Below the pieces are notes generated by a model, which saw only the letters and a list, made by a program, of their open reading frames with translations, ran no database searches and was not told the origin of the DNA. A program made the position numbers and the translations under genes. 64,000 bases of DNA from the IMG/VR virus record IMGVR_UViG_3300034012_003212, positions 62,001 to 126,000 of that record; one strand, written 5' to 3'. Below, piece by piece: positions 2,437 through 62,304 of the stretch (positions are counted from its first letter, which is position 1; each line of letters opens with the position of its first letter).

Positions 2437-5098
2437 AAAATGGATCTCTGAAGAATCCACCTTTTTCCTTACCGGCTGAGCACCATTTCCATAAAAAAAG
2501 AAGAAATGCTATGTTATCTAGGCTAAGACGCTCCCAGACAGGAAATTCATCTGAAATCATAGGAAGAGATGCTGCAAGAGATGGGTTCAATTCTGCAAGA
2601 AAATTCATGTGCGTGATCTTCGGGGACAAGATCGAAGCCATAGATTGAACTGACCCCAGAGAAAGGCTGAAACCTTGTATCAAGGATGACACGTTTATCT
2701 TATTAAGATCTATGACAGGAACTTTTATGTTACCAATAAGATTCCTCAGGTCCTCAAGAGAACTATCATATTCATTGTATCTTTCTCTTATCTCATTTAT
2801 CTTCTCATCATACTGCTTTTTTGCTTTACTTATTTCATCGTTGTACTTGTCACTTGCATTTTTTACTAAATTATCGGCCGATTGTTTTGCTAAATCTATC
2901 ATGTCTTGTGCCCTCTTCTTCTCTTGCTCAAATCGGTTAATCTCCTCATTCAGTCTGGTTTCGTTCACTTTTACCAATTCCTCGACGTCTTTGTTGAATT
3001 TATCACGAAGGGCATTTAATCTCACGCTTACCATTTCTCTGGATAAAGGATCCTTTAGATTTTCGAGCTGAGACTTTAGATTTTTTTCCTGGATAGAAAA
3101 TTCATTTTCATATGCAGAAATTGTTTCTTGTGTGCTTTTTCTTAGATTATCTGATGCAGCATCTAAAGATTTTTTCGCAGAATCTTTGATCGTTGCTGCT
3201 TTGTTCTCCGCATCTTTTATCGCGTCAGATGCAGATTTTTTAAGGTATTCAAAGTAAACATACGCAGACTGTTCAAGTTCGGCTTCCTTTTGTTTTGCTT
3301 CAGAAAGGAGAGATCCAACTGATATGCCTACTCCACTTCTCAATGATTTTACTGCTTCATTTATCAATTGCATGAGTGGATTTATGCTTGGAAATGGAAT
3401 GCTTGACAATGACTCATGGCTACTTATGTTTATTGCACCCCGTATGGCGAGAATGAAATAAGGATTGTTTGATTTAAATGGCCCAACAGGAAATGGCAAA
3501 AAATGCTGAGCAAACAAAAAAGGGCATGGTAGTATACCGCACTGACCTATGAATAGTACATATATCCCTGTTTCGCTTGCTATAACGAACAATGGTATCC
3601 ATATGATAGGAAACGGAACCTTTATGAGTGCAACCGGAGTTGGTATAATGAGTCCTATCGGCCAATGAACTGGTATGAGGTTTACTATTGTGGCAAGCGT
3701 TGAAAACTTCTTCCACCATGCATAATCAAATATTGTGGGATTTGTGCTCACATTCTTGAAGTTTACATCTTTTCCAGATTCAACTCCCGGAACTATCTCT
3801 TTCTGAGAACATCCCATCTTTGCAAGTTCCTGATTTACGAGATCATTGACCTTCGATATTACTGCTTCTGCTATCTTTTCCCTCTCCTTTGCAGAATCAT
3901 ACTTCTTCTTTATATCATCGGAATCTGTTTTCCTAAATGCAAGCCTAGTCTTAAAATCGGATGGAAGCTTTTCCTTCTTAGAGAATTTATTAACTCCATA
4001 AGAAAATGATATTTCACCTATAAATTTTAGTGTGTTTTTATATGCGTTATCAAGGTCCAGCTCAGCTTTTTTCGCCAGTTCCAAGGCAGAAGTTTGGTTT
4101 GACTCAACAGTTAAATCAATAGAAGTTATATCATTGGAAAGTTTCGTCGGTATATCCTTAACAGTTCCAAAAAGATCCTTTGATTTATCAAAACCCGCAT
4201 CTAATTTTTCTGCGTCGACGTACAACTGGGAACTGAACTTACCGTATGCTGATGACAGTTGTTTCTGTGCATCCTTTGCGTTTTTACCATACTTGTTAGT
4301 TTTTACCAGATTCTTTAGTGTATCTGATATCTTTGTTTTTTCAGTAGCTGATTGAGCGCTAGAAAGAAGCCTCTGTAGTCTATTGGATTCATCATACCCC
4401 TTCAGGAACGATTCGTAAAATTTATATGATAACTGAGTATAGTAATAATCAAGCTGTAACGATTGTACTTCTTCTTTTGCCTTTTTATATTCTTCTGTCT
4501 GGTCCTGTATCTTTTTTGACAATGAGTTCATCACAGAAAAGCAACCTGAACCGTTTGATGAAAAAAGAGGGACCGTCTGTTCCCTCTCGGCAAAAACCCC
4601 GTCCGATGCAACCTGGCCTTCTTTTAGTGCTCCTGTGCTCAGTGAAGGCTTTAAAGGCGTTGCAGGGATTGGCTGACCATTCTTCTGCTTCCTCCTCTGT
4701 TCTGTCCCAAGAGGATCAAGAACACTATTGATGGATGTTTCTAGACTAGATATGAACTGATCTATGACGGATGGATCAAAATCTCCGACGGATTGTGGCG
4801 TGGAACTTCTATCTATCGAAAATGGAGGTATTACCTGTGCAGTGATCGGGTTCGTGAGTTCTTCGAAGGGTATCTTAACTGGCTCACATGCCGCCTGTTC
4901 TACTTCGCTGTCATTAAATAATTGAGCCGCCTCTGTTTCTTCCGGGGCGCACACAATCTCATCCTCGTATGGAATAAGATCCAGCTCAGAAGGAACCGGG
5001 GACTGATCTGCTTCTGCTAAACGGAGTGCATCAGCGAGCTCCTTCTCTGAAAGAGAAGTTAGATCAATTTCCTTTGGTTCCTGATCATTCACTAACAT
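2435..5098 (-). CDS. Large coiled-coil protein with a central Pro-rich hydrophobic segment; probable virion/baseplate-associated
   Basis: 887-aa ORF with K/E/A-rich heptads flanking WPIGLIIPTPVALIKVPFPIIWIPLFVIA...; lies two genes downstream of gp5. Confidence 0.55.
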   Translation of the reverse strand: MLVNDQEPKEIDLTSLSEKELADALRLAEADQSPVPSELDLIPYEDEIVCAPEETEAAQLFNDSEVEQAACEPVKIPFEELTNPITAQVIPPFSIDRSSTPQSVGDFDPSVIDQFISSLETSINSVLDPLGTEQRRKQKNGQPIPATPLKPSLSTGALKEGQVASDGVFAEREQTVPLFSSNGSGCFSVMNSLSKKIQDQTEEYKKAKEEVQSLQLDYYYTQLSYKFYESFLKGYDESNRLQRLLSSAQSATEKTKISDTLKNLVKTNKYGKNAKDAQKQLSSAYGKFSSQLYVDAEKLDAGFDKSKDLFGTVKDIPTKLSNDITSIDLTVESNQTSALELAKKAELDLDNAYKNTLKFIGEISFSYGVNKFSKKEKLPSDFKTRLAFRKTDSDDIKKKYDSAKEREKIAEAVISKVNDLVNQELAKMGCSQKEIVPGVESGKDVNFKNVSTNPTIFDYAWWKKFSTLATIVNLIPVHWPIGLIIPTPVALIKVPFPIIWIPLFVIASETGIYVLFIGQCGILPCPFLFAQHFLPFPVGPFKSNNPYFILAIRGAINISSHESLSSIPFPSINPLMQLINEAVKSLRSGVGISVGSLLSEAKQKEAELEQSAYVYFEYLKKSASDAIKDAENKAATIKDSAKKSLDAASDNLRKSTQETISAYENEFSIQEKNLKSQLENLKDPLSREMVSVRLNALRDKFNKDVEELVKVNETRLNEEINRFEQEKKRAQDMIDLAKQSADNLVKNASDKYNDEISKAKKQYDEKINEIRERYNEYDSSLEDLRNLIGNIKVPVIDLNKINVSSLIQGFSLSLGSVQSMASILSPKITHMNFLAELNPSLAASLPMISDEFPVWERLSLDNIAFLLFLWKWCSAGKEKGGFFRDPF

Positions 5099-52230: not shown

Positions 52231-52791
52231 TTAGTTCTCTTCATCAAACTCGATTAATTCATCGGGGTCCAACAGTCCCATTATCTTGGCATTCAGTTTA
52301 TCAAGATACGATTGAACTTTTGACTTCCTAACCATTGCTTCGTTCAGACAGATGAGAACGGGCTCAACGATTGCTGCAAGTTTTAATGCAGAATTGTATC
52401 CAGTTCCTGTCGCCTTCTGAAGATAATAATACAGAGCTTCTAAGTGTATGTTGGTCATGCCAAAATTATACTCATCGCTCTGAAGTGTGGCTGATTCTTC
52501 CTTTGCTTCTTTCAAAGCATTGTGTAAACGAATAACGCCTAGCGCATCCTTTCCATCGTACTTTACATCATTTTCAATGAAATTAAGGCATTTTGTTACA
52601 AATGACCTTTCAGTTGAAACTATGTATTTCCTTTCATCGAAATTCTTGGAAACAACTTGAATTTGTTCCCGCAACTCAGAAATCTCAGACTCGCTAAGAG
52701 TCCTAAAATTCTTCGTTTCCTCGGTTGAAGCATCACTTGTTGTGATAATTTCTCCCTCTATAGCATCAACTTGTGCTATCTCTTCTCTCAT
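52231..52791 (-). CDS. Hypothetical helical protein
   Basis: 186-aa ORF. Confidence 0.65.
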   Translation of the reverse strand: MREEIAQVDAIEGEIITTSDASTEETKNFRTLSESEISELREQIQVVSKNFDERKYIVSTERSFVTKCLNFIENDVKYDGKDALGVIRLHNALKEAKEESATLQSDEYNFGMTNIHLEALYYYLQKATGTGYNSALKLAAIVEPVLICLNEAMVRKSKVQSYLDKLNAKIMGLLDPDELIEFDEEN

Positions 52792-53557
52792 ACAGTACCT
52801 CGTAATTAAATGATGAATGAAACTTGTTCAATAACTCTTTGAACCCATTAAAGTATATATCTCTATCTTTGCGCAACAACTCAAAAATCTGAAGTCCAGT
52901 CTTATCATTACATATTAAGATCTGGGATTTTTCTACCTCCATCTCATACATCTCCTCGTATGCGACCATGTATGCCGCAACTTGCATGAAGTATGTCTCA
53001 ATCTCGTCCTCTGTTTTTTCCCTACTCGATGATTTATAGTCTCGAATTATGACAGAATTCTCAGTGAAATATGAACAATCACACGTTCCGGCGAACTTAT
53101 GTTCCAATGAAAACAGAGGTTCTTCCAATCCAGATATGAACTTAAAGTCGGATAAAAACTTAGGGGAATTGTAGTAAAAGTAGAATAGTTTTCTCCCCTT
53201 GGCTATAGTATCACGGCTGAATCCTTTTTCAGTTAGGCTTGTTGGAACTAATTCCTGCGTTTTCTGAAGTGCACTATTTTTATTGTGTGATATGTTGTAT
53301 TCTCGCATGAATACCTCGAGGAATTCATGCATGCACGTACCACGATCTGCTGCAGCCTTTGCTATAGACTTACTCGCTTCTTCTCCTACTGATAATTTCC
53401 ATTGCTCTAATTTTGGATTAGGTAGGAGGGATGTAACTGTTGTTACTGAAGGAAAATATAACCAGTTAAGACCAGTTCGGGTGTATTCGTTTATCTTGTA
53501 GAAACGCTTCCCATCTATCTCTTCACGGCCGTCGTAGAGATACTTATTTTGATACAT
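52766..53557 (-). CDS. PD-(D/E)XK exonuclease (T4-like/Cas4-like fold)
   Basis: FPSVTTV...RGTCMHEFLE...EEPL...FAGTCDC...IRDYKSS...QVAAY. Confidence 0.85.
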   Translation of the reverse strand: MYQNKYLYDGREEIDGKRFYKINEYTRTGLNWLYFPSVTTVTSLLPNPKLEQWKLSVGEEASKSIAKAAADRGTCMHEFLEVFMREYNISHNKNSALQKTQELVPTSLTEKGFSRDTIAKGRKLFYFYYNSPKFLSDFKFISGLEEPLFSLEHKFAGTCDCSYFTENSVIIRDYKSSSREKTEDEIETYFMQVAAYMVAYEEMYEMEVEKSQILICNDKTGLQIFELLRKDRDIYFNGFKELLNKFHSSFNYEVLYERRDSTS

Positions 53558-54023
53558 ATGTACTAAAAAAATATTTTAGGTAAGGAAAAGACCATATAAT
53601 AAAACAAGCGAATATGACCCTTCTCACAAACCACCAGAACCCTATCTCGTACATTAACGGTGAAAATTTGATGAGATATGAATTCGTTTCTTCGATTCTT
53701 TCGACGGTTGGCATTATGATTTCCGATAGGTTATTGTCAACCAACCAGTTTATCATAGGTTTTATCCTATCGAGAACAAGAGTTTTTTGCACGTCATTGG
53801 GGAGGCTTTGTTCTTCAAATGGAACGGACCTCACTGTGTACATTCTACCTACCCAGTCATGGCGTAAATTGAACTCAAGCCATTTTTCATTTCCCCTGTT
53901 TTTCCGTATGAATAGCCAGATGTAAACGTAGAAATAAATGTCCTTAAGTCCAGTTTTTAGCAAAAAAATATTTATCATTCTCTGAATTCTCCGAGTATAG
54001 TCAGATGCTCTTCCATTCATCAT
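53544..54023 (-). CDS. Hypothetical protein with a C-terminal transmembrane segment
   Basis: 159-aa ORF; IGFWWFVRRVIFACFIIWSF. Confidence 0.55.
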   Translation of the reverse strand: MMNGRASDYTRRIQRMINIFLLKTGLKDIYFYVYIWLFIRKNRGNEKWLEFNLRHDWVGRMYTVRSVPFEEQSLPNDVQKTLVLDRIKPMINWLVDNNLSEIIMPTVERIEETNSYLIKFSPLMYEIGFWWFVRRVIFACFIIWSFPYLKYFFSTYVSK

Positions 54024-54669
54024 ATAAATGCTGCAATCTATTTTTCAAGATTCGTCTTCCCTTATGAATGTATATCTTGCACTTGGGCATGTCTAGTTTA
54101 TACTTTTCTGCAAGATCCTTGTAACTCATCTTGTGGACTTCCCGATCCCAAATTATCCCCTTGTATCTATCATCAAGCTCTCGTATTTCTTTTATTACTG
54201 ATCGAATGAGGTATCTGAGGGCATCGTTTTTTATCTGTTTATCCGCATCGGGATTATCAATGTACTGATCCTTGACAGAAGATTCTATAAACATCTTAGC
54301 CTGAGACTGAGACGAATCCGAAGATCCTGCGGTGTGTGTTAATTCACCGTTGTTCATGGAAACTTCTTTGTATTTTTTCTTTTTACTCAGCTTGATAAGA
54401 GCTTCATTTTTTGCTATGGTATAAGACCATGTAGAAAATTTGAAGTATTCATTATAGCTGTCAATATTTATAAATATCTTCAGTAATGCATCACTGACGC
54501 AATCTTCCACGTCCATGTGTGAAAGTTCATTCGCTGCATTATAGTATTTATTTATAAAGAACTGAAAACGAGGCTTGAGCTCATTGTACAAAATGATGTA
54601 ATTCTCATGCGTCCTCGTGTTGAAATACTGCATGCCCAATTGCTGCAGATCTCTACCTTCTCTTCTCAT
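54001..54669 (-). CDS. ECF-type sigma-70 family RNA polymerase sigma factor
   Basis: Region 2 DVEDCVSDALLKIF...KFSTWSYTIAKN; region 4 MSYKDLAEKYKL...KIYIHKGRRILK. Likely start MRREG at 54669. Confidence 0.85.
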   Translation of the reverse strand: MRREGRDLQQLGMQYFNTRTHENYIILYNELKPRFQFFINKYYNAANELSHMDVEDCVSDALLKIFINIDSYNEYFKFSTWSYTIAKNEALIKLSKKKKYKEVSMNNGELTHTAGSSDSSQSQAKMFIESSVKDQYIDNPDADKQIKNDALRYLIRSVIKEIRELDDRYKGIIWDREVHKMSYKDLAEKYKLDMPKCKIYIHKGRRILKNRLQHLYDEWKSI

Positions 54670-55189
54670 TATATTCCTCCAAAATATAAGGGTAGTGATT
54701 ATGGAAATCACTGAAACTTCCGTGTCTTATCTTTAGCTTATCGGAATTTAAGACTGCGAGATGACGAATATCTCGATACTCTTCTTTCCAGTATATGCAC
54801 TTAAATCCTGAATTTATGAGGATTTTCATACATACTTCGCATGGAGAGTGTGTTAGAAGAACGACATAATCCTCTGGATTGTGTTCGTTGAACTTTGCAA
54901 CAAGATTCATTTCTGCATGGACAAACCCACTAGATCCGGATTCGAGGGAATTCTCCTCGCCGGACGTTGCTGGATTTATTTCAGCTCCTGGATATGAACC
55001 GTTGTAACCAAAACTGCCAATCTTTGAAAAGTCTTTTTTCAGTGCAATTGCACCAACCTTCAAAGTCTTTGAAACAGAAAGGCTTGCAATCTGACAAACA
55101 AAGTCAGTGAAAACATCTATCTTCTGGGACTTCCTCTTTGAACCCATGATCGAATCAACTTCCGTGGATGGTCTGAACTCGCTGCTCAT
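54653..55189 (-). CDS. dCMP deaminase
   Basis: KVGAI...GYNG...HAEMN...THSPCEVCMK (zinc-binding HAE and PCxxC). Confidence 0.9.
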   Translation of the reverse strand: MSSEFRPSTEVDSIMGSKRKSQKIDVFTDFVCQIASLSVSKTLKVGAIALKKDFSKIGSFGYNGSYPGAEINPATSGEENSLESGSSGFVHAEMNLVAKFNEHNPEDYVVLLTHSPCEVCMKILINSGFKCIYWKEEYRDIRHLAVLNSDKLKIRHGSFSDFHNHYPYILEEYNEKRR

Positions 55190-55228: not shown

Positions 55229-56995
55229 TTATCGACCTTCGTTCAAAAATCCTGATAGCGTGATGTTCTTAGCTATTTCCGCACCAAGTTTCTTTATCGA
55301 AGAAAGAGAAAGCTCAACTACATTAGAGGGAACGATCGTGGGATTGTTGATGTTCATCGGAGAAAAGACATTCGTGTTTTCTTCCTTTGAGGGTTCTGTT
55401 TTAGAAAATTCTGGATTGACGAATGTCACACTTTCCTTTGCATTGAAGGGCGGTGATGCAGATTCTTCAGTGGAAACATTATTGGTTATACTCATCGGCT
55501 GTATGTTTGTTACAGAAGTTTGTATAGCCTGCGATATATTTTCTGCCAGTTCCTTTGATGTTATTTTTTCGGTGGCTTCGCTCTCTCGGGTAATCATCCT
55601 CTCAACCGCATTGAAGAATGTTTCAGTTCTTGGCGTTATGACTATACTAGGAGTGGATTGAGGTGCTTCTCCGGTCGCAACTTCTCTAGTAGTGGAACCG
55701 CCTTCCACATACGAAGAGGAATTGTTAAGATCCATAGATCGTATGGATTCGATGATTCTGTCTTTGATCAAATTGGTCGATGTTCTCTCTGAGGTTCTAA
55801 TCTCTGGAGATTGAGATTCAACAAAGGGGATGCTTGTTGAATTTGAGATCATGTCATTCTGCAATACGCTGGTGCTGATCTTCTCTACTTCATTCAAAAT
55901 AGGAATAGTGCTTTCGATCACCTTAGTTTTTTCAATGAGCTGATTCAAAGAAGATGACAGGGTATCTTTGCTCGTCTGGATCCTTTCACTCGTTCCAGGA
56001 TATTGCTCAACAGGTGTGGTGACTATATTCTCTGTCGCTTCCCTGACTTCGGACGATGATTTTTCTAACATTCGTTCAAGTGAAGACGAAACATCTCTCA
56101 TCTGTGAAGTTGTTTCCACCGCAGTCTCGGCTTTTTTCTCGGTTGTTATTGCATTGAAGAGGGAAGAAAAAGTATTCTGCACTCCATCGATAATACGCTC
56201 CTTTAGAACGGATGCAACAGGTAACACATTGAGTGATCCACCCGGGAGCTGTTGCACAACTTCTTTTGTTGTTTCTAACGTCTTAGAAAAAACTTGATTC
56301 TCTGCCCCAAACGATGTTTTTGAATTTGATATAAACTCCTGCAGACTGTTCCCCGACTCCTTTTCCGTGTTCCTTTCTACTATGTTAGATATTACGCTCT
56401 GTATGAAGTTTTCAGTCTTTGATGCTATCTGATTTGTGAGCTCCGACGATTCAGTTGAAGTTGTGCTAGTCGATTCCCTTTCCCCGGGAACTGAAAATAT
56501 CCTGGTTTCTATAGGTTGCACTGAAGAAACTTGGGGTTCTACTACTGGAGCTTCTGCTGATCTTTCATTCGCCTGAACGTTTACATTGACGGTTATTTCC
56601 GGGGGGAATTGTTGTACGATTGGACCTGTTTCCCTAACTATAGGCTGCTGGGTCTCAGGTTTGGCCTTTTGTTCTAGAACTGTGGTCTTAGAAGGAGCTG
56701 ATGAAATCTCTCGTTGTTCGAGTATCTTTCCATACTGTTTCTCTACATTCTTTACACTGATCTCGCTTGACTTCTTTTTCGCAATGATGTAATCATCTTC
56801 CTTTTTCTCAAAGGATACATCAAAATCAAGCATGGCAGAATTCAGGTACTCGACTGCATCTGATTCGCCGTCGTATGAATACACAGCAGATTGGATCGCA
56901 TCCAATTCATCCTGTGAAAACACGGAATCACTCGATGCTTTTACCACGAGCTGGTCATCACTACTGGAGGCTAAGATGATGTTTTCTTCATCCAT
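55229..56995 (-). CDS. Probable tape measure / gp29-like protein (S/T/E-rich, low complexity)
   Basis: 588 aa, at the canonical position after sheath-tube-chaperones; assignment by synteny only. Confidence 0.45.
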   Translation of the reverse strand: MDEENIILASSSDDQLVVKASSDSVFSQDELDAIQSAVYSYDGESDAVEYLNSAMLDFDVSFEKKEDDYIIAKKKSSEISVKNVEKQYGKILEQREISSAPSKTTVLEQKAKPETQQPIVRETGPIVQQFPPEITVNVNVQANERSAEAPVVEPQVSSVQPIETRIFSVPGERESTSTTSTESSELTNQIASKTENFIQSVISNIVERNTEKESGNSLQEFISNSKTSFGAENQVFSKTLETTKEVVQQLPGGSLNVLPVASVLKERIIDGVQNTFSSLFNAITTEKKAETAVETTSQMRDVSSSLERMLEKSSSEVREATENIVTTPVEQYPGTSERIQTSKDTLSSSLNQLIEKTKVIESTIPILNEVEKISTSVLQNDMISNSTSIPFVESQSPEIRTSERTSTNLIKDRIIESIRSMDLNNSSSYVEGGSTTREVATGEAPQSTPSIVITPRTETFFNAVERMITRESEATEKITSKELAENISQAIQTSVTNIQPMSITNNVSTEESASPPFNAKESVTFVNPEFSKTEPSKEENTNVFSPMNINNPTIVPSNVVELSLSSIKKLGAEIAKNITLSGFLNEGR

Positions 56996-56998
56996 ATT

Positions 56999-57170
56999 TT
57001 ATAGTATCTTTTTTGTTCCCAGCTTCGCTTCTTCGATCTTATCAAGAAGTTCAAGGTAATTTTCAAGAAGTGTCTGGTACTCATAGAATGGCATGGATTC
57101 TATTCCTGTACTGCTGAGATTCAACTTCATGTACAACAACATCTTTGTGTTCAGAAAATCCGATAGATCA
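56999..57170 (-). CDS. gp51: gp51-like small tail-chaperone domain; start uncertain, possibly reached by frameshift
   Basis: FQIDLSDFLNTKMLLYMKLNLSSTGIESMPFYEYQTLLENYL resembles T4-like gp51 (..TELENMMPWERxxY..L). First ATG is at 57142. Confidence 0.6.
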
Positions 57171-58097
57171 ATCTGAAATGTTTGGTATAAAGAGTTCTTT
57201 AATTCCTCGCTGAAATCGAAGTGGTGCGACGACCCCGGCATCGCAGCTAGAACACTTATAGTAGAGATCAACCGAGTAAGATGAATTGATTCGTTCCACA
57301 AATGACTTAACGTACACGTAGATGTCAGGAGTCCAATCATCGAGCTTAGCCTCGAATGAATCAAAATCTTTCTTGCTTAGCTTCGTCCATGGCTTAACAA
57401 CAAAACACGCCATGAATTTATCCTGAGACTCTTCCTTTGAAAGAAACTTCCTGGCTTGTTGCATATTATAACAGCTAGGAAGGCAGAGCGAAACATTTTT
57501 GCCTGAAATAGTTCTCACTATCATTCGTTGTTCTTCGGAGTAGTGATTGAAGAAATCATTCAGTGCATCTTTCTTCATCGTTCCTATCCTCTCGGGCCGA
57601 ACATCAACTTGATCTTTGTTTCCGCATGATGTGCACGTACATTCTGCATTCATTATAGAAGGAAACTCGGTGAACGTCATACTTCGTATGATGAGAATAA
57701 GATACAATCTATCGATCTCGAGTAACGAATCTGTGTCAAACTCTGGATTTGTTTCCGATTGGACAAGAACAGCCTCGTTTATTATCATACGAAGCTTTGC
57801 ATCGACATCCATGCCGTCATTCTCATCTATTGATGAAAAGTGTCGTATGGCGCTAACTTTTAGTGGGAACACAACAATAACAAGATCTTCTGGATAAAAG
57901 AAACCCCGTGAACTCAAGTAGGATGGAGGCACAGCTTTTCCGCCATGCAGTTCTCGTATATCCTTTTTCTTCTCTTTTTGTGGTTCTATTATAGCATCTA
58001 AACTTCTATCAGCACCATCCTTTGATGTCTGGGCCTCATCATTTTCTATAATTTTTCTAAGGAAATCTTCGTTAGCTTGGGTAAATATGCCACTCAT
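57168..58097 (-). CDS. gp26: Baseplate hub / tail assembly chaperone, gp26-like
   Basis: LLEIDRLYLILIIRSMTF...CTCTSCG...YKCSSC (two CxxC pairs). Confidence 0.7.
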   Translation of the reverse strand: MSGIFTQANEDFLRKIIENDEAQTSKDGADRSLDAIIEPQKEKKKDIRELHGGKAVPPSYLSSRGFFYPEDLVIVVFPLKVSAIRHFSSIDENDGMDVDAKLRMIINEAVLVQSETNPEFDTDSLLEIDRLYLILIIRSMTFTEFPSIMNAECTCTSCGNKDQVDVRPERIGTMKKDALNDFFNHYSEEQRMIVRTISGKNVSLCLPSCYNMQQARKFLSKEESQDKFMACFVVKPWTKLSKKDFDSFEAKLDDWTPDIYVYVKSFVERINSSYSVDLYYKCSSCDAGVVAPLRFQRGIKELFIPNISD

Positions 58098-58197: not shown

Positions 58198-58803
58198 TTA
58201 CCTTGTGATGTTATCCCAGTAATCTGCCTTGAACTTGAATCCGGTTACCTTTGCAATCTCGGTTCCCTTTGTATAATCAAATCCTTCAAACACTCCACTA
58301 AGAGGAGTCGTCGGGAATATTTGCCTGAACACCATCTGTTTGATAACAACGCCCTTCTTGTTATACACAAGAACTGTCATCGAAGAAGGATCATCTGCGG
58401 TTCCCGCGTATTCACTCTTCAGACCAGTTTCGCCAGTAAGAGGGTTGTACATAAGATCGTTCCATGCCTTAAGGGCCTTGAAAACGTATGAGCTATTCTG
58501 ATTATCCAAGTTCAACTCAAACGAAAGTGTCAATTCAACACTAGTGTCAGTGGGTATCGTTCCCATGAAAGTCCTTGTGACACCTTTGTACTTCTGAGTC
58601 ACGGTTCCGGGCATTTTCTCTATTGCGCCAGTTCCTGAAATCTCAGTGAGGTTGTCTATAATAAGACCTGTGTTTTCCCAGGGTGTGCCAGTTCGAATGG
58701 CAGCAGGAGGCGTTATTCGCACCTCAAAAAGATTCTTATAGATAGGCTCGAAGGATTGCATCGAAGCCTGAGAAAGCCTAAAATGTGGAAGTCCTGTTGA
58801 CAT
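58198..58803 (-). CDS. gp19: Tail tube protein, gp19-like
   Basis: EPIYKNLFEVRITPP...QKYKGVTRTF...LSFELNL...KAWNDLMYNPLTG...FKADYW. Confidence 0.85.
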   Translation of the reverse strand: MSTGLPHFRLSQASMQSFEPIYKNLFEVRITPPAAIRTGTPWENTGLIIDNLTEISGTGAIEKMPGTVTQKYKGVTRTFMGTIPTDTSVELTLSFELNLDNQNSSYVFKALKAWNDLMYNPLTGETGLKSEYAGTADDPSSMTVLVYNKKGVVIKQMVFRQIFPTTPLSGVFEGFDYTKGTEIAKVTGFKFKADYWDNITR

Positions 58804-58821: not shown

Positions 58822-61800
58822 TTATACTATTGTAAAACCGCCACTCGCGATACCGCCGGTTTTAAATACGGTTATCCTATTTATGATCTTCTGGAGTCCA
58901 CGCGCGGGCTCAATCTGAACATCTACTATTCCAATATTCTGATCGATAATTGCCTGTGTATTATTCGTCTCATCCATGATGACGCGATAATCATAAACTC
59001 CTCCTGCTGTCCTCACACCTTCAAGAAAACTAGCAACTTTGTTCTTTATTTCAAGTCGTGTTGCTTCATCGTTGAAGTCGAAGATGAAGTTCGTAAGGAT
59101 AGACTCGATCGACTGCTCTATCGTGATGAGAAGATCTCTCACATGGAGGTTATTGAACGCTGATATAGTCTTCTGGAACGTAGTCTGATTTGCATATATC
59201 AATGTTCCCTTTCCGCGCTTTGTGACGATAGGATTGAAACCGATAGGCTCAAGAACCTCTCTATCAGATAAGAACAGATCGGATTCAACACCAACGAGAT
59301 TAGGATCGCTTATAATACCCCTCTTCGTTCCTGCTACTATCGCATAAGGATAACCGGAGATGAATTTTTGCACAAAGTTGTTAGAAACGTGTGCAGAAGG
59401 CGGAACCAATATATTCTTGTTGTTCTCCCTAAGAACTATGTAAGGGAAGAACACTCCGCAGTACTTCGCGCCGTTGTCTTCATCAGGAAGACTGAACGTA
59501 AATGAAGGACCTAGAGACAGGTTACCACCGGCTGCGATATACTCCGTGTTAATAACAGGCCTCGGGATTCCAGCACCAGGATTCGGTTCATCCGTGAATC
59601 GAGGATCAGATGAATCAAAGAATTGCTTCAATGAAGGAGGATTCAAGAATGCAAGACATTTTCCGCGATTCTTCGCAAGTCTTGATAGTATATTCTTTGC
59701 CCCCAACTGAGGAGCAAGTCCTCCGTCGAATGTATCAATGATGTAACGGAAATCTATGATGTCAGAATCAGAAAGTGTCTCGAATATGTTAGTATTCTCG
59801 AGAACACCGAGGATCTTCTCAAGTTGAGAATTCTTGGTTCCAGACGAAGAAGGCAAATGGTATTCTGTCATCTTGAAACCTGACATGCTCATCAACTGAT
59901 AATTCGTAACAAGATTCTCTATTCCCTTGTAATGAATAACAGTCGGGTCAGTCGATTCATTTTGAATGTATGCAGGTTGCGAAATTGTCACCTGATACGT
60001 TATTATGCCGCTAACTGCATTAACTTTCTTTACTTTAGTCTTTATCTTCGACATGTGATATGACTCATCGCCGCTCTCGTCATACATTATACTAACGAGA
60101 TACTCACCAACGTTGAGACCAGCGCCGCTAGTTTCATCGAATGTAAGAACAGTGCGGCTAGTATCCCACGACTGTAACTCAACTCCAGTTTTGAGAGATT
60201 CTGCCGATATTGTCACGGTCATAGTGCCGCCACATTCTATGTTAGTATCTGCAACCTTCGAATTAAGGTTCTCATCAGAATACACATAAACGTAAAGAAC
60301 ATCCATACCATTGGCATCTTTACCGCGCTGGAACTTTAGGTATCCATCAGGATCCAGTGCACTGTTACATAGGAGTTCAGCAGAGTAGTATTCACCGTCC
60401 ACGATACTGATGTCCTCGTATGCTTTGTATATGTCAGAGTAGGGGTATGCAACATAAACGTCGTCCTCAGAATTATATCCATCAACATAAACCATGTCAA
60501 ATGCAGCCGGCTGATATGCAAAGGCTATGTTGTTATATCCGGCATTTTCATAAATTCTCGGGCAAACATATGAACCAAAGGTCACTGTGTAATTTGAAAC
60601 AACGCCAGCAGAAACCAGCTCTGCAAATTCAGAATTTACAACAATCGTAACACTCATAAGGTCAGTAGCACTGTTGTATGATGTGCTTGCTATTGTTGCA
60701 TAAAATTCAATTGTTCCGTTGGACACGAGTACCTTACGGCCTTCAGCGAGCCCTTTATCGGTTGTGAGATCCGTTGCAGAAGAAAACTTTATGATAGAAG
60801 AAGATGAACTTGCATCTATAGCATACGGCGTCCTTGTGCTTTCGTCCTCTTTCGCAGGGTGTGTATAAGAAACTTTAAGGTATGTGTTTCCGCCGATTAT
60901 AGATTCAGCAACACTACGAACAACACCCCAGCGGGCCAATTCATCGTTATCATTTGTGTTCAAAAGTATATTACTCTTTGCAACAACCAATGAATTCTTT
61001 ATCTCGTTGTACTGTTCAAGCGTGAAATCCGTGTCTGTGGACAGGGGCTTCTTTATCGAAAGGACGTTATCGAACCATCCATAAGCACCACCGACTTTAG
61101 AACTGTCGAGTGTGAAGAAGTCGTTAGACGTCGTGCAAGAATATGTCGAATAATCCGAAAAATCGGGCTGTTGATCAACTGCGTCACCTGGAGTGTTATT
61201 AGGAGATACGTTGAGCTCTGATACATCCACTTGGTTTGTGTTGATCTGCCTAGCGCCGAACGTGAAGTCTAAGCTTGTGTCCAGGTTGGCCTTATATGAC
61301 AAAAAGTCCATCTTGGTGCCCGAAAAATCGGGGGTTCCAAAACTGTGACCAACGAGGTCTATCTTGCTAGTCGAATCTACATAATTTCCCAACTGCTCAC
61401 GGTTTATTGCACAGAACAGTCCAGTCACACTTGTTCCATTATTTATGATGGTATCAAGAGACTGGTTTATATTGTTAGAATCGATGAAATCGGGGATGAT
61501 ACATCCTACGAATGAACCGATCTTTATAACCTCAGGCGATGCCAAAAAGTTATTTATTTGGTTCTTCTTTATACCCTTCTTATCAAAATATGTTGAATAT
61601 ACGGGATTTATTGCAAGCTCGGAATAATTGCTCCAATCACCTTGAACTATATCTACTTGCAAGAAATACTCAGAAATAGAATCCCATTCATATACGTAAT
61701 CGGGAACTTCCTGATTCAATTGAGAATAATATTCCTTTGCTGTTATATCATAACCCTTGATTCCAACAGCTTTACGCACAAATACCGATATAGGAGTCTG

Positions 61801-62304
61801 GCCTATATTTACAAAGCTAAGAAGCTTTCCTGTGTTCAGGGGGCTGTTGTTGGAAACAGAAATCAGGTTATCTTCAGACAACTTGAAAAATCTTTGTGTG
61901 TCATAGAAACTCTCGTAGAGGCTCTTTGTCTTTGTTCCATTTGCCTCTGTTGCCGACAGGGAGTATGACATGTAATCAACTGCATCGCCGCCGTCAGAAA
62001 TCGGCTTATTGTTCAAAGGAAGCAAATTAAGAGCATAAACAGGGCCTGTGCGAAGACAGGTGATCAAGGAGCGATGGAAAAATGATCCACGGCTCTCGAG
62101 AAATTTATCTGTATCGCCAAAAACCGTCTTCATTTCCTTCACATCACGAAGGAAAACTGGTGTGTTAAAGGGTCCCTTTCTTGAGAATCCAACAACCAAT
62201 CTGAGAGTGTTTGTGTTGACGACTATTCTCTCACTAGCGTCGAACTCGACGGTGTAGACTCCGCTAGCTTTAAACCTATTTAGATCAAGGGTTACATTTG
62301 CCAT
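58822..62304 (-). CDS. gp18: Tail sheath protein, gp18-like
   Basis: ASGVYTVEFD...VGFSRKGPFNTP...VPPSAHVSN...VAGTKRG...GFNPIV...LHVRDLLI...FDFNDEATR...CDETNN-like MDETNNT. Confidence 0.95.
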   Translation of the reverse strand: MANVTLDLNRFKASGVYTVEFDASERIVVNTNTLRLVVGFSRKGPFNTPVFLRDVKEMKTVFGDTDKFLESRGSFFHRSLITCLRTGPVYALNLLPLNNKPISDGGDAVDYMSYSLSATEANGTKTKSLYESFYDTQRFFKLSEDNLISVSNNSPLNTGKLLSFVNIGQTPISVFVRKAVGIKGYDITAKEYYSQLNQEVPDYVYEWDSISEYFLQVDIVQGDWSNYSELAINPVYSTYFDKKGIKKNQINNFLASPEVIKIGSFVGCIIPDFIDSNNINQSLDTIINNGTSVTGLFCAINREQLGNYVDSTSKIDLVGHSFGTPDFSGTKMDFLSYKANLDTSLDFTFGARQINTNQVDVSELNVSPNNTPGDAVDQQPDFSDYSTYSCTTSNDFFTLDSSKVGGAYGWFDNVLSIKKPLSTDTDFTLEQYNEIKNSLVVAKSNILLNTNDNDELARWGVVRSVAESIIGGNTYLKVSYTHPAKEDESTRTPYAIDASSSSSIIKFSSATDLTTDKGLAEGRKVLVSNGTIEFYATIASTSYNSATDLMSVTIVVNSEFAELVSAGVVSNYTVTFGSYVCPRIYENAGYNNIAFAYQPAAFDMVYVDGYNSEDDVYVAYPYSDIYKAYEDISIVDGEYYSAELLCNSALDPDGYLKFQRGKDANGMDVLYVYVYSDENLNSKVADTNIECGGTMTVTISAESLKTGVELQSWDTSRTVLTFDETSGAGLNVGEYLVSIMYDESGDESYHMSKIKTKVKKVNAVSGIITYQVTISQPAYIQNESTDPTVIHYKGIENLVTNYQLMSMSGFKMTEYHLPSSSGTKNSQLEKILGVLENTNIFETLSDSDIIDFRYIIDTFDGGLAPQLGAKNILSRLAKNRGKCLAFLNPPSLKQFFDSSDPRFTDEPNPGAGIPRPVINTEYIAAGGNLSLGPSFTFSLPDEDNGAKYCGVFFPYIVLRENNKNILVPPSAHVSNNFVQKFISGYPYAIVAGTKRGIISDPNLVGVESDLFLSDREVLEPIGFNPIVTKRGKGTLIYANQTTFQKTISAFNNLHVRDLLITIEQSIESILTNFIFDFNDEATRLEIKNKVASFLEGVRTAGGVYDYRVIMDETNNTQAIIDQNIGIVDVQIEPARGLQKIINRITVFKTGGIASGGFTIV

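Follow-up and report, generated by a model that had tools for sequence, protein, structure and literature searches.

A freshwater jumbo phage and its relatives seem to make two tail-assembly proteins from one gene through a conserved +1 frameshift

Frameshifted tail assembly chaperones (TACs) are a textbook feature of long-tailed phages, examples being lambda G/GT, HK97 gp13, P2 E/E+E' and Mu (Xu, Hendrix & Duda 2004). In these systems, two proteins share an N-terminal body, the longer one being made by a programmed frameshift near the 3' end of the gene, which is −1 in lambda, HK97 and P2 and uses other frames in a few cases. T4-type phages have stood outside this otherwise near-universal rule. 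In T4, genes 26 and 51 are divergently transcribed neighbors encoding paralogs (BLASTP 2e-06) that are both covered by Pfam PF12322 (T4_baseplate), with gp51 longer than gp26 by about 45 C-terminal residues and no frameshift involved. These proteins are considered hub assembly chaperones, gp51 having long been described as an essential hub-assembly protein of unknown function that is absent from the virion (PMC3004832). As for +1 frameshifting, the described sites include CUU_UGA in prfB, the capsid and tail genes of Listeria phage PSA, and UUU_CGU in influenza PA-X. In such sites, a P-site tRNA on an NUU or UUU codon can re-pair one base forward on a U run, which results in a minor long product.

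We analyzed a 64,000-nucleotide stretch (hereafter the window) of a 260,658-bp IMG/VR virus record (88% complete, GC 41.6%), in which an earlier note had proposed that a gp26-like ORF is joined by a programmed frameshift to a gp51-like sequence in the +1 frame. The tail genes from the sheath gene to the 588-aa ORF all lie on the minus strand (Table 1). The arrangement described in the note is real. The end of the gp26-like ORF, which we named X, is exactly the reverse complement of window 57168-57221 and finishes with ATT TCA GAT TGA, while the +1 frame is open from 57364 to 56999 and reads FQIDLSDFLNTKMLLYMKLNLSSTGIESMPFYEYQ. The note had stated that the +1 frame has no ATG before 57142, which is correct between FQI (57178) and that position. 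However, there is an ATG at 57241-57239, inside X and 21 codons upstream of FQI. This ATG is not conserved since five of 14 close relatives have none upstream, and its position differs in the others. Near-identical DNA is found in lake and freshwater metagenomes from at least 11 studies, and contigs from four independent studies cover the junction with no indel and no substitution between 57016 and 57263. The two-frame layout is therefore real DNA rather than an assembly error. An alternative genetic code, considered because Lak phages recode TAG, was ruled out because the genome uses all three stops (TAA 122, TGA 71, and TAG 47), long ORFs are intact, and the frame-0 read-through after TGA is full of further stops.

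Table 1. Coordinates of the features at the junction and of the neighboring tail genes (window positions)
Position	Strand	Feature	Support
58822..62304	-	Tail sheath gene (1160 aa)	PF17482 at 1.1e-08; phrog_34521 "tail sheath" at 6.8e-106
58198..58803	-	Tail tube gene (201 aa)	phrog_32623 at 8.4e-25; phrog_45 "tail tube" at 5.2e-06
57168..58097	-	Frame-0 ORF X (309 aa), stop TGA at 57170-57168; gp26-like short product (hub / tail assembly chaperone family)	phrog_36717 at 7.8e-17; see text
57618..57971	-	Residues 43-160 of X, domain with predicted TAC fold	See text
57624..57635	-	First CxxC pair of the zinc ribbon (C155, C158)	Invariant in an alignment that includes X (A1)
57243..57254	-	Second CxxC pair of the zinc ribbon (C282, C285)	Invariant in A1; aligns with KCPECG of T4 gp26
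57173..57185	-	Interval in which the ribosome would have to change frame, CCA AAC ATT TCA G; most likely slip on A_UUU_CA (57179-57174)	See text
56999..57175	-	+1-frame extension QIDLSDF...GTKKIL (58 codons) plus stop TAA at 57001-56999; gp51-like tail; predicted long product of 365 aa (X residues 1-307 plus 58)	See text
57140..57142	-	In-frame ATG inside the extension (Met of KTK-M-LLY); possible secondary start for a 47-aa peptide	Conserved in 14 of 14 close relatives
55229..56995	-	588-aa Ser/Thr/Glu-rich ORF starting four bases after the extension; probable tape measure protein by position only	No family hit; the gene in the same position in Chryseobacterium phage MA9V-2 hits tape-measure family phrog_4372 at 9.6e-07

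As for the protein encoded in frame 0, X belongs to the T4 gp26/gp51 family, an assignment that rests on relatives and on predicted structure. X itself has no Pfam hit at E<=0.1, and a direct PF12322 search of its genome was blank, as it was in the control genomes. In contrast, 11 of 27 full-length relatives hit PF12322 (best 6.7e-10), and P0013 carries a weak precomputed hit. Membership is therefore by transitive homology. When an AlphaFold model of X (pLDDT 77.5) was compared with the viral models in BFVD using Foldseek, there were 55 hits at E<=1e-3 with a probability of 1.00, including "Gp26 base plate hub subunit" (3.3e-05), "T4 gp51-like" (1.4e-04), and "Baseplate hub assembly protein, T4-like" (7.4e-08). 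Moreover, hhalign of A1 against T4 gp26 shows that the C-terminal zinc ribbon and the motif that follows, YYKCSSCDAGV..RGIKELF, align locally with IKCPECGKTH..RGLKEFF (E 2.6e-04). X is nevertheless about 100 residues longer than the T4 proteins at its N terminus. No solved structure is related by sequence to X or to T4 gp51, and Foldseek of either model against the PDB gave nothing significant. We modeled residues 43-160 of X alone (pLDDT 87.7) and compared the model exhaustively (VIA-align) with 48,161 PDB chains. The three best matches were 3fgx (Z 6.4, 90 of 96 residues aligned), 2ob9, which is the TAC of HK97 (Z 6.0), and 3klu, or YqbN (Z 5.0), while unrelated chains scored 3.3 or less. 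These are precisely the three entries described as phage TACs in a published structural comparison (PMC9603447). The Z values are moderate, which shows a shared fold but does not prove homology, and we found no family-level sequence match to any Pfam TAC family.

The extension in the +1 frame matches the C-terminal tail that distinguishes T4 gp51 from gp26. Of 31 diverse homologous extensions, 23 hit phrog_634 ("baseplate hub assembly catalyst"), always at profile positions 63-120 (best 2.9e-06), and T4 gp51 residues 147-246 cover positions 2-103 of the same profile. The copy in the window scores nothing by itself, but it aligns with the members that do (alignment A2). An hmmsearch between seven T4-like gp51/gp26 sequences and the conceptual fusions was too weak to use, hhalign of the fusion profile against the gp51 profile gave only a weak colinear alignment (E 0.0087, probability 4.6%), and hhalign of the extension profile against single T4 gp51 was not significant. 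An initial impression that YQI in T4 corresponds to FQI is not supported by that alignment. Consequently, on sequence evidence, frame 0 gives a gp26-type protein, while frame 0 plus frame +1 would give a gp51-type protein.

Next, to determine whether the frame offset is conserved, a comparison that the earlier note had suggested, we collected homologous loci. A DNA-level search of the phage collection and a single-protein scan of IMG/VR found nothing, and an alignment was needed as the query. This produced 169 loci with a readable junction (80 from IMG/VR, 80 from metagenomes, eight from Logan/ENA/JGI contigs, and two phage records), corresponding to 121 distinct junctions after removal of duplicates. 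The conserved extension motif, [P..][YFW][YFWS]E[YFLWI], lies in frame +1 in 116 of these and never in +2 or frame 0, while the other five, which are cut by contig ends or carry a variant motif, are also in +1. The median open length after the stop is 59 codons in +1 but 11 in +2. This is far beyond chance. The same +1 arrangement is seen in six more distant phages: Prevotella megaphage Lak-C1, three 460-735-kb uncultured phages (LR756502, LR745206, and LR756501), Tenacibaculum pT24, and Sphingomonas PAU.

An alternative to frameshifting is that the downstream ORF is a separate small gene translated from its own start, either ATG 57142 in this clade, or a noncanonical start or reinitiation after the frame-0 stop elsewhere. 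The close relatives (47-55% identity) all keep this ATG, gene callers use it to annotate a 47-aa ORF, and the deposited annotations of MA9V-2, pT24, and PAU list separate small CDSs. However, more distant clades have F, R, or V at this position, the Met of MPFYEY is I, L, Y, W, S, or E in relatives, and 45 of 116 junctions have no ATG anywhere in the open +1 frame upstream of the motif. No TTG, GTG, or ATT is conserved either, the +1 codon at −1, for example, being TTG in 48 cases and TTA in 47. Moreover, the 12 codons upstream of ATG 57142 (QIDLxDFFKTK) are under purifying selection in frame +1, with many synonymous changes, and in T4 gp51 the homologous tail is covalently joined to the PF12322 body. 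This makes a separate gene unlikely, although the close clade could still produce a 47-aa peptide.

Next, we explored where the frame changes. All junctions were anchored on the +1 Phe codon (TTT at 57178-57176 in the window), which is Phe in 113 of 113 anchored junctions, and pairwise synonymous and nonsynonymous differences were counted per codon in both frames. In the close clade, synonymous change in frame 0 is high up to Pro305 (CCA/CCG, with CCA at 57185-57183), about 0% from codon +2 on, and essentially absent from Asp309 on. In contrast, frame +1 shows 100, 73, 73, and 55% synonymous change from codon +1 on (CAG/CAA, ATT/ATA, GAT/GAC, and CTA/CTT/CTG/CTC), where CAG is at 57175-57173. 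In the CAA subclade, frame +1 is 100% synonymous at codons 2-4, where frame 0 is 0%. The frame-0 stop moves, being located 3-6 codons after the anchor in the close clade, where it occupies five different positions, and 9 codons after it in most others, while product length stays colinear. Together, these findings place the switch in a short U-rich patch several codons before the stop, in which the only re-pairing option is AUU to UUU on A_UUU_CA. The sites proposed in the note, CTT-CGA and TTT-C(AG), at about 57222-57211, are rejected since they lie 12-15 codons upstream, where frame 0 (LRFQRGIKELF) is still under strong selection and frame +1 is not.

In the more distant clades (96 junctions), frame +1 is already constrained three codons earlier. 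Frame-0 codons −1 and 0 are NTT in 95 of 96 and 96 of 96 junctions, against a background third-position T frequency of 0.53, whereas the overlapping +1 codons vary freely at their third position (TCG/TCA/TCC and TTG/TTA). Likewise, PAU and LR756502 resemble each other in frame +1 from FSL onward, while their frame-0 tails are unrelated. In these clades the slip is therefore probably CUU to UUU on C_UUU_UC, CTT TTC being present in 88-90 of 96 junctions. However, the site is not the same string in all lineages. A few sequences lack CTT TTC, one subclade has GTT CAA at the anchor (candidate RUU_CAA), and no candidate is obvious in Lak or pT24. The site seems to have moved by a few codons between lineages.

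A shift at the frame-0 stop codon itself, as in prfB, is tempting because a stop in the A site is a classic +1 stimulator and most relatives end frame 0 with CTT CTT TGA/TAA or CTT ATT TAA, identical in form to the prfB site. In the window, the corresponding site would be GAU_UGA_U. However, frame +1 is already under selection 7-8 codons before the stop, as illustrated by ISLEN, where ATC TTT GGA, ATC TCT GGA, ATC GCT GGA, and CTC TCT GGA all encode the same +1 peptide. In addition, the codon before the stop in the close clade is GAT, AGT, TCT, CTT, CAA, AGC, GCG, GAC, or AGA, with poor +1 re-pairing. The frame-0 tail GELL* does keep some constraint of its own (Leu codon 86% synonymous), but this fits a functional short product ending like T4 gp26 (FFELL). 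We therefore consider a shift at the stop very unlikely. Transcriptional slippage is more doubtful still. The switch point does lie in a T-rich patch (TTT in the window, TTTT in close relatives, and CTTTTC in others), but runs of 3-4 T are far below the length that gives polymerase slippage. A decaying pseudogene is equally doubtful since both frames are kept intact, under purifying selection, in 121 distinct junctions.

We then looked for elements that might stimulate a shift and found none. RNAalifold gives no consensus pair over 27 diverse junctions, the local fold is no better than shuffled sequence (z = 0.45), and no upstream Shine-Dalgarno-like element is conserved. Codon rarity is rejected because TCA is the commonest Ser codon in this genome, in which in-frame ATT TCA occurs 39 times against 24 expected, making NUU_UCA nothing special. 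The genome encodes only three tRNAs, none for Ser or Gln.

Together, these findings are best explained by programmed +1 ribosomal frameshifting, and the interpretation in the earlier note is thus partly supported, being right in its core but wrong in its slip sites. In this view, most ribosomes would read frame 0 to the TGA and make the gp26-like protein, consisting of an N-terminal helical part, a domain with the predicted TAC fold, and a zinc ribbon. A fraction would slip one base forward, in the window most likely when peptidyl-tRNA-Ile moves from AUU to UUU so that CAG is read next, and would continue to the TAA to produce the same body with a gp51-like tail. By analogy with lambda G/GT and with T4 genetics, the pair probably chaperones the tape measure and hub during tail assembly. 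A low-level shift would be enough if the long form acts in small amounts, in line with T4 gp51 being required but not in the particle (PMC3004832). What our analysis establishes is the two-frame anatomy, its conservation, the switch in selective constraint, and the family and fold assignments. That ribosomes really shift and make the long protein, the exact nucleotide, the efficiency, and the function, including any binding of the long product to the tape measure and of the short one to the tube, are inferred from sequence and by analogy. We are confident that a programmed +1 shift makes a gp51-like long form, but only slightly more confident than not that A_UUU_CA is the exact site in the window.

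Compared with lambda G/GT and the related TAC frameshifts, this locus shares the logic, a body domain with the predicted fold of HK97 gp13, and a location between the tube gene and an ORF that is a probable tape measure gene by position only. As for that location, BLASTP of the 588-aa ORF against T4 gp29 found no similarity. The locus differs in direction, which is +1 rather than −1 or −2, in the absence of an XXXYYYZ heptamer at the switch point, in its larger body with a zinc ribbon and a PF12322 affiliation, and in an extension unrelated in sequence to the T domain. Compared with T4, the short product ends like gp26 (zinc ribbon, then RGxKExF, relatives ending in ELL*) and the long one would carry the gp51-type tail, but T4 encodes the two forms as separate genes, a refinement to the note. 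Compared with the described +1 sites, the A-site codon is a common sense codon (UCA, or CAA in one subclade) rather than a stop or a rare codon. Deposited annotations of the cultured relatives list two unrelated "hypothetical proteins," one Acinetobacter T4-like phage record calls gp51 a "tape measure protein assembly chaperone," and full-text searches found no paper describing a gp26/gp51 frameshift.

An important biological implication is that the body-plus-tail pair encoded in T4 as gp26 and gp51 is encoded here, and in more than a hundred relatives among jumbo and mega phages (including Lak, PAU, pT24, MA9V, and 600-kb phages), by one gene with a strictly conserved +1 offset. It is possible, although we hold this tentatively and as slightly less likely than not, that the gp26/gp51 hub assembly proteins of T4-like and jumbo contractile-tailed phages are the long-missing G/GT-type TACs of that lineage. 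A single gene with a +1 frameshift would then be the widespread and possibly ancestral state, from which the two-gene solution of T4 would derive or which it would replace. The shift would use a new kind of +1 site, a short U run followed by a common sense codon with no stop, rare codon, Shine-Dalgarno element, or RNA structure, whose position drifts by a few codons between lineages while the offset is strictly kept. Our findings also correct the annotation of a whole clade, in which the extension is currently either a "hypothetical" mini-ORF or missed, and offer a natural series of +1 recoding sites without the usual stimulators for the study of frame maintenance. Since the body has the predicted chaperone fold, this locus links T4 gp51 to the frameshifted tail chaperone rule and suggests a testable function for gp26 and gp51.

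Some relatives carry an insertion of 30-40 codons in the +1 extension, with a second "FQ(I/V)D..." segment, which looks like an internal duplication of the start of the gp51-like tail. This is seen at the homologous loci L009, L012, and L090, in which the extension is about 130 codons long, and at L085, L094, L086-L088, L115, and L126. As for the end of frame 0, most loci of the far clade terminate with CTT CTT TGA/TAA (also CTA CTT TGA or CTT ATT TAA), the same string type as the prfB +1 shifty stop. Although the constraint analysis puts the frame switch upstream of this string, a second, minor shift at the stop is not excluded.

In T4, gp26 and gp51 are paralogs (BLASTP 2e-06), both in PF12322. 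Their genes are divergent neighbors in T4, RB69, Ac42, and Bp7, but are tandem (51 then 26, overlapping) in Cronobacter phage GAP161 (locus L177). T4 also annotates an internal product, 26'.

The ORF that follows the chaperone gene is very rich in Ser, Thr, and Glu and matches no tape-measure family, nor T4 gp29, while its homologs in close relatives vary from about 550 to 830 aa. The genes downstream of it were named from precomputed Pfam hits on the syntenic locus L164. As listed from a GTG start, the sigma-70 r2/r4-like factor overlaps the dCMP deaminase by 59 nt. The phage genome as a whole (record G000) encodes only three tRNAs (Lys-UUU, Met-CAU, and Arg-CCU), and near-identical DNA turns up in lake and freshwater metagenomes from many studies and in a "crustacean metagenome."

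Coordinates of neighboring genes in the window and of the compared loci
Sequence	Coordinates	Strand	Feature
Window	55229-56995	-	588-aa ORF after the chaperone gene
Window	52766-55189	-	Downstream genes (the three below)
Window	54653-55189	-	dCMP deaminase
Window	54001-54711	-	Sigma-70 r2/r4-like factor
Window	52766-53557	-	PD-(D/E)XK nuclease
L172 (T4)	3803-5229		Genes 26 and 51
L013 (far-clade locus)	3280-3310		Example of the frame-0 end

When the chaperone-fold domain was compared with solved structures, the fourth-best match, just after the three known tail assembly chaperones, was PDB entry 5ir0 (Z 4.0, 81 residues aligned), which corresponds to ORF19 of a Vibrio cholerae PICI-like element. 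This protein may itself be a chaperone-fold protein of a phage satellite.
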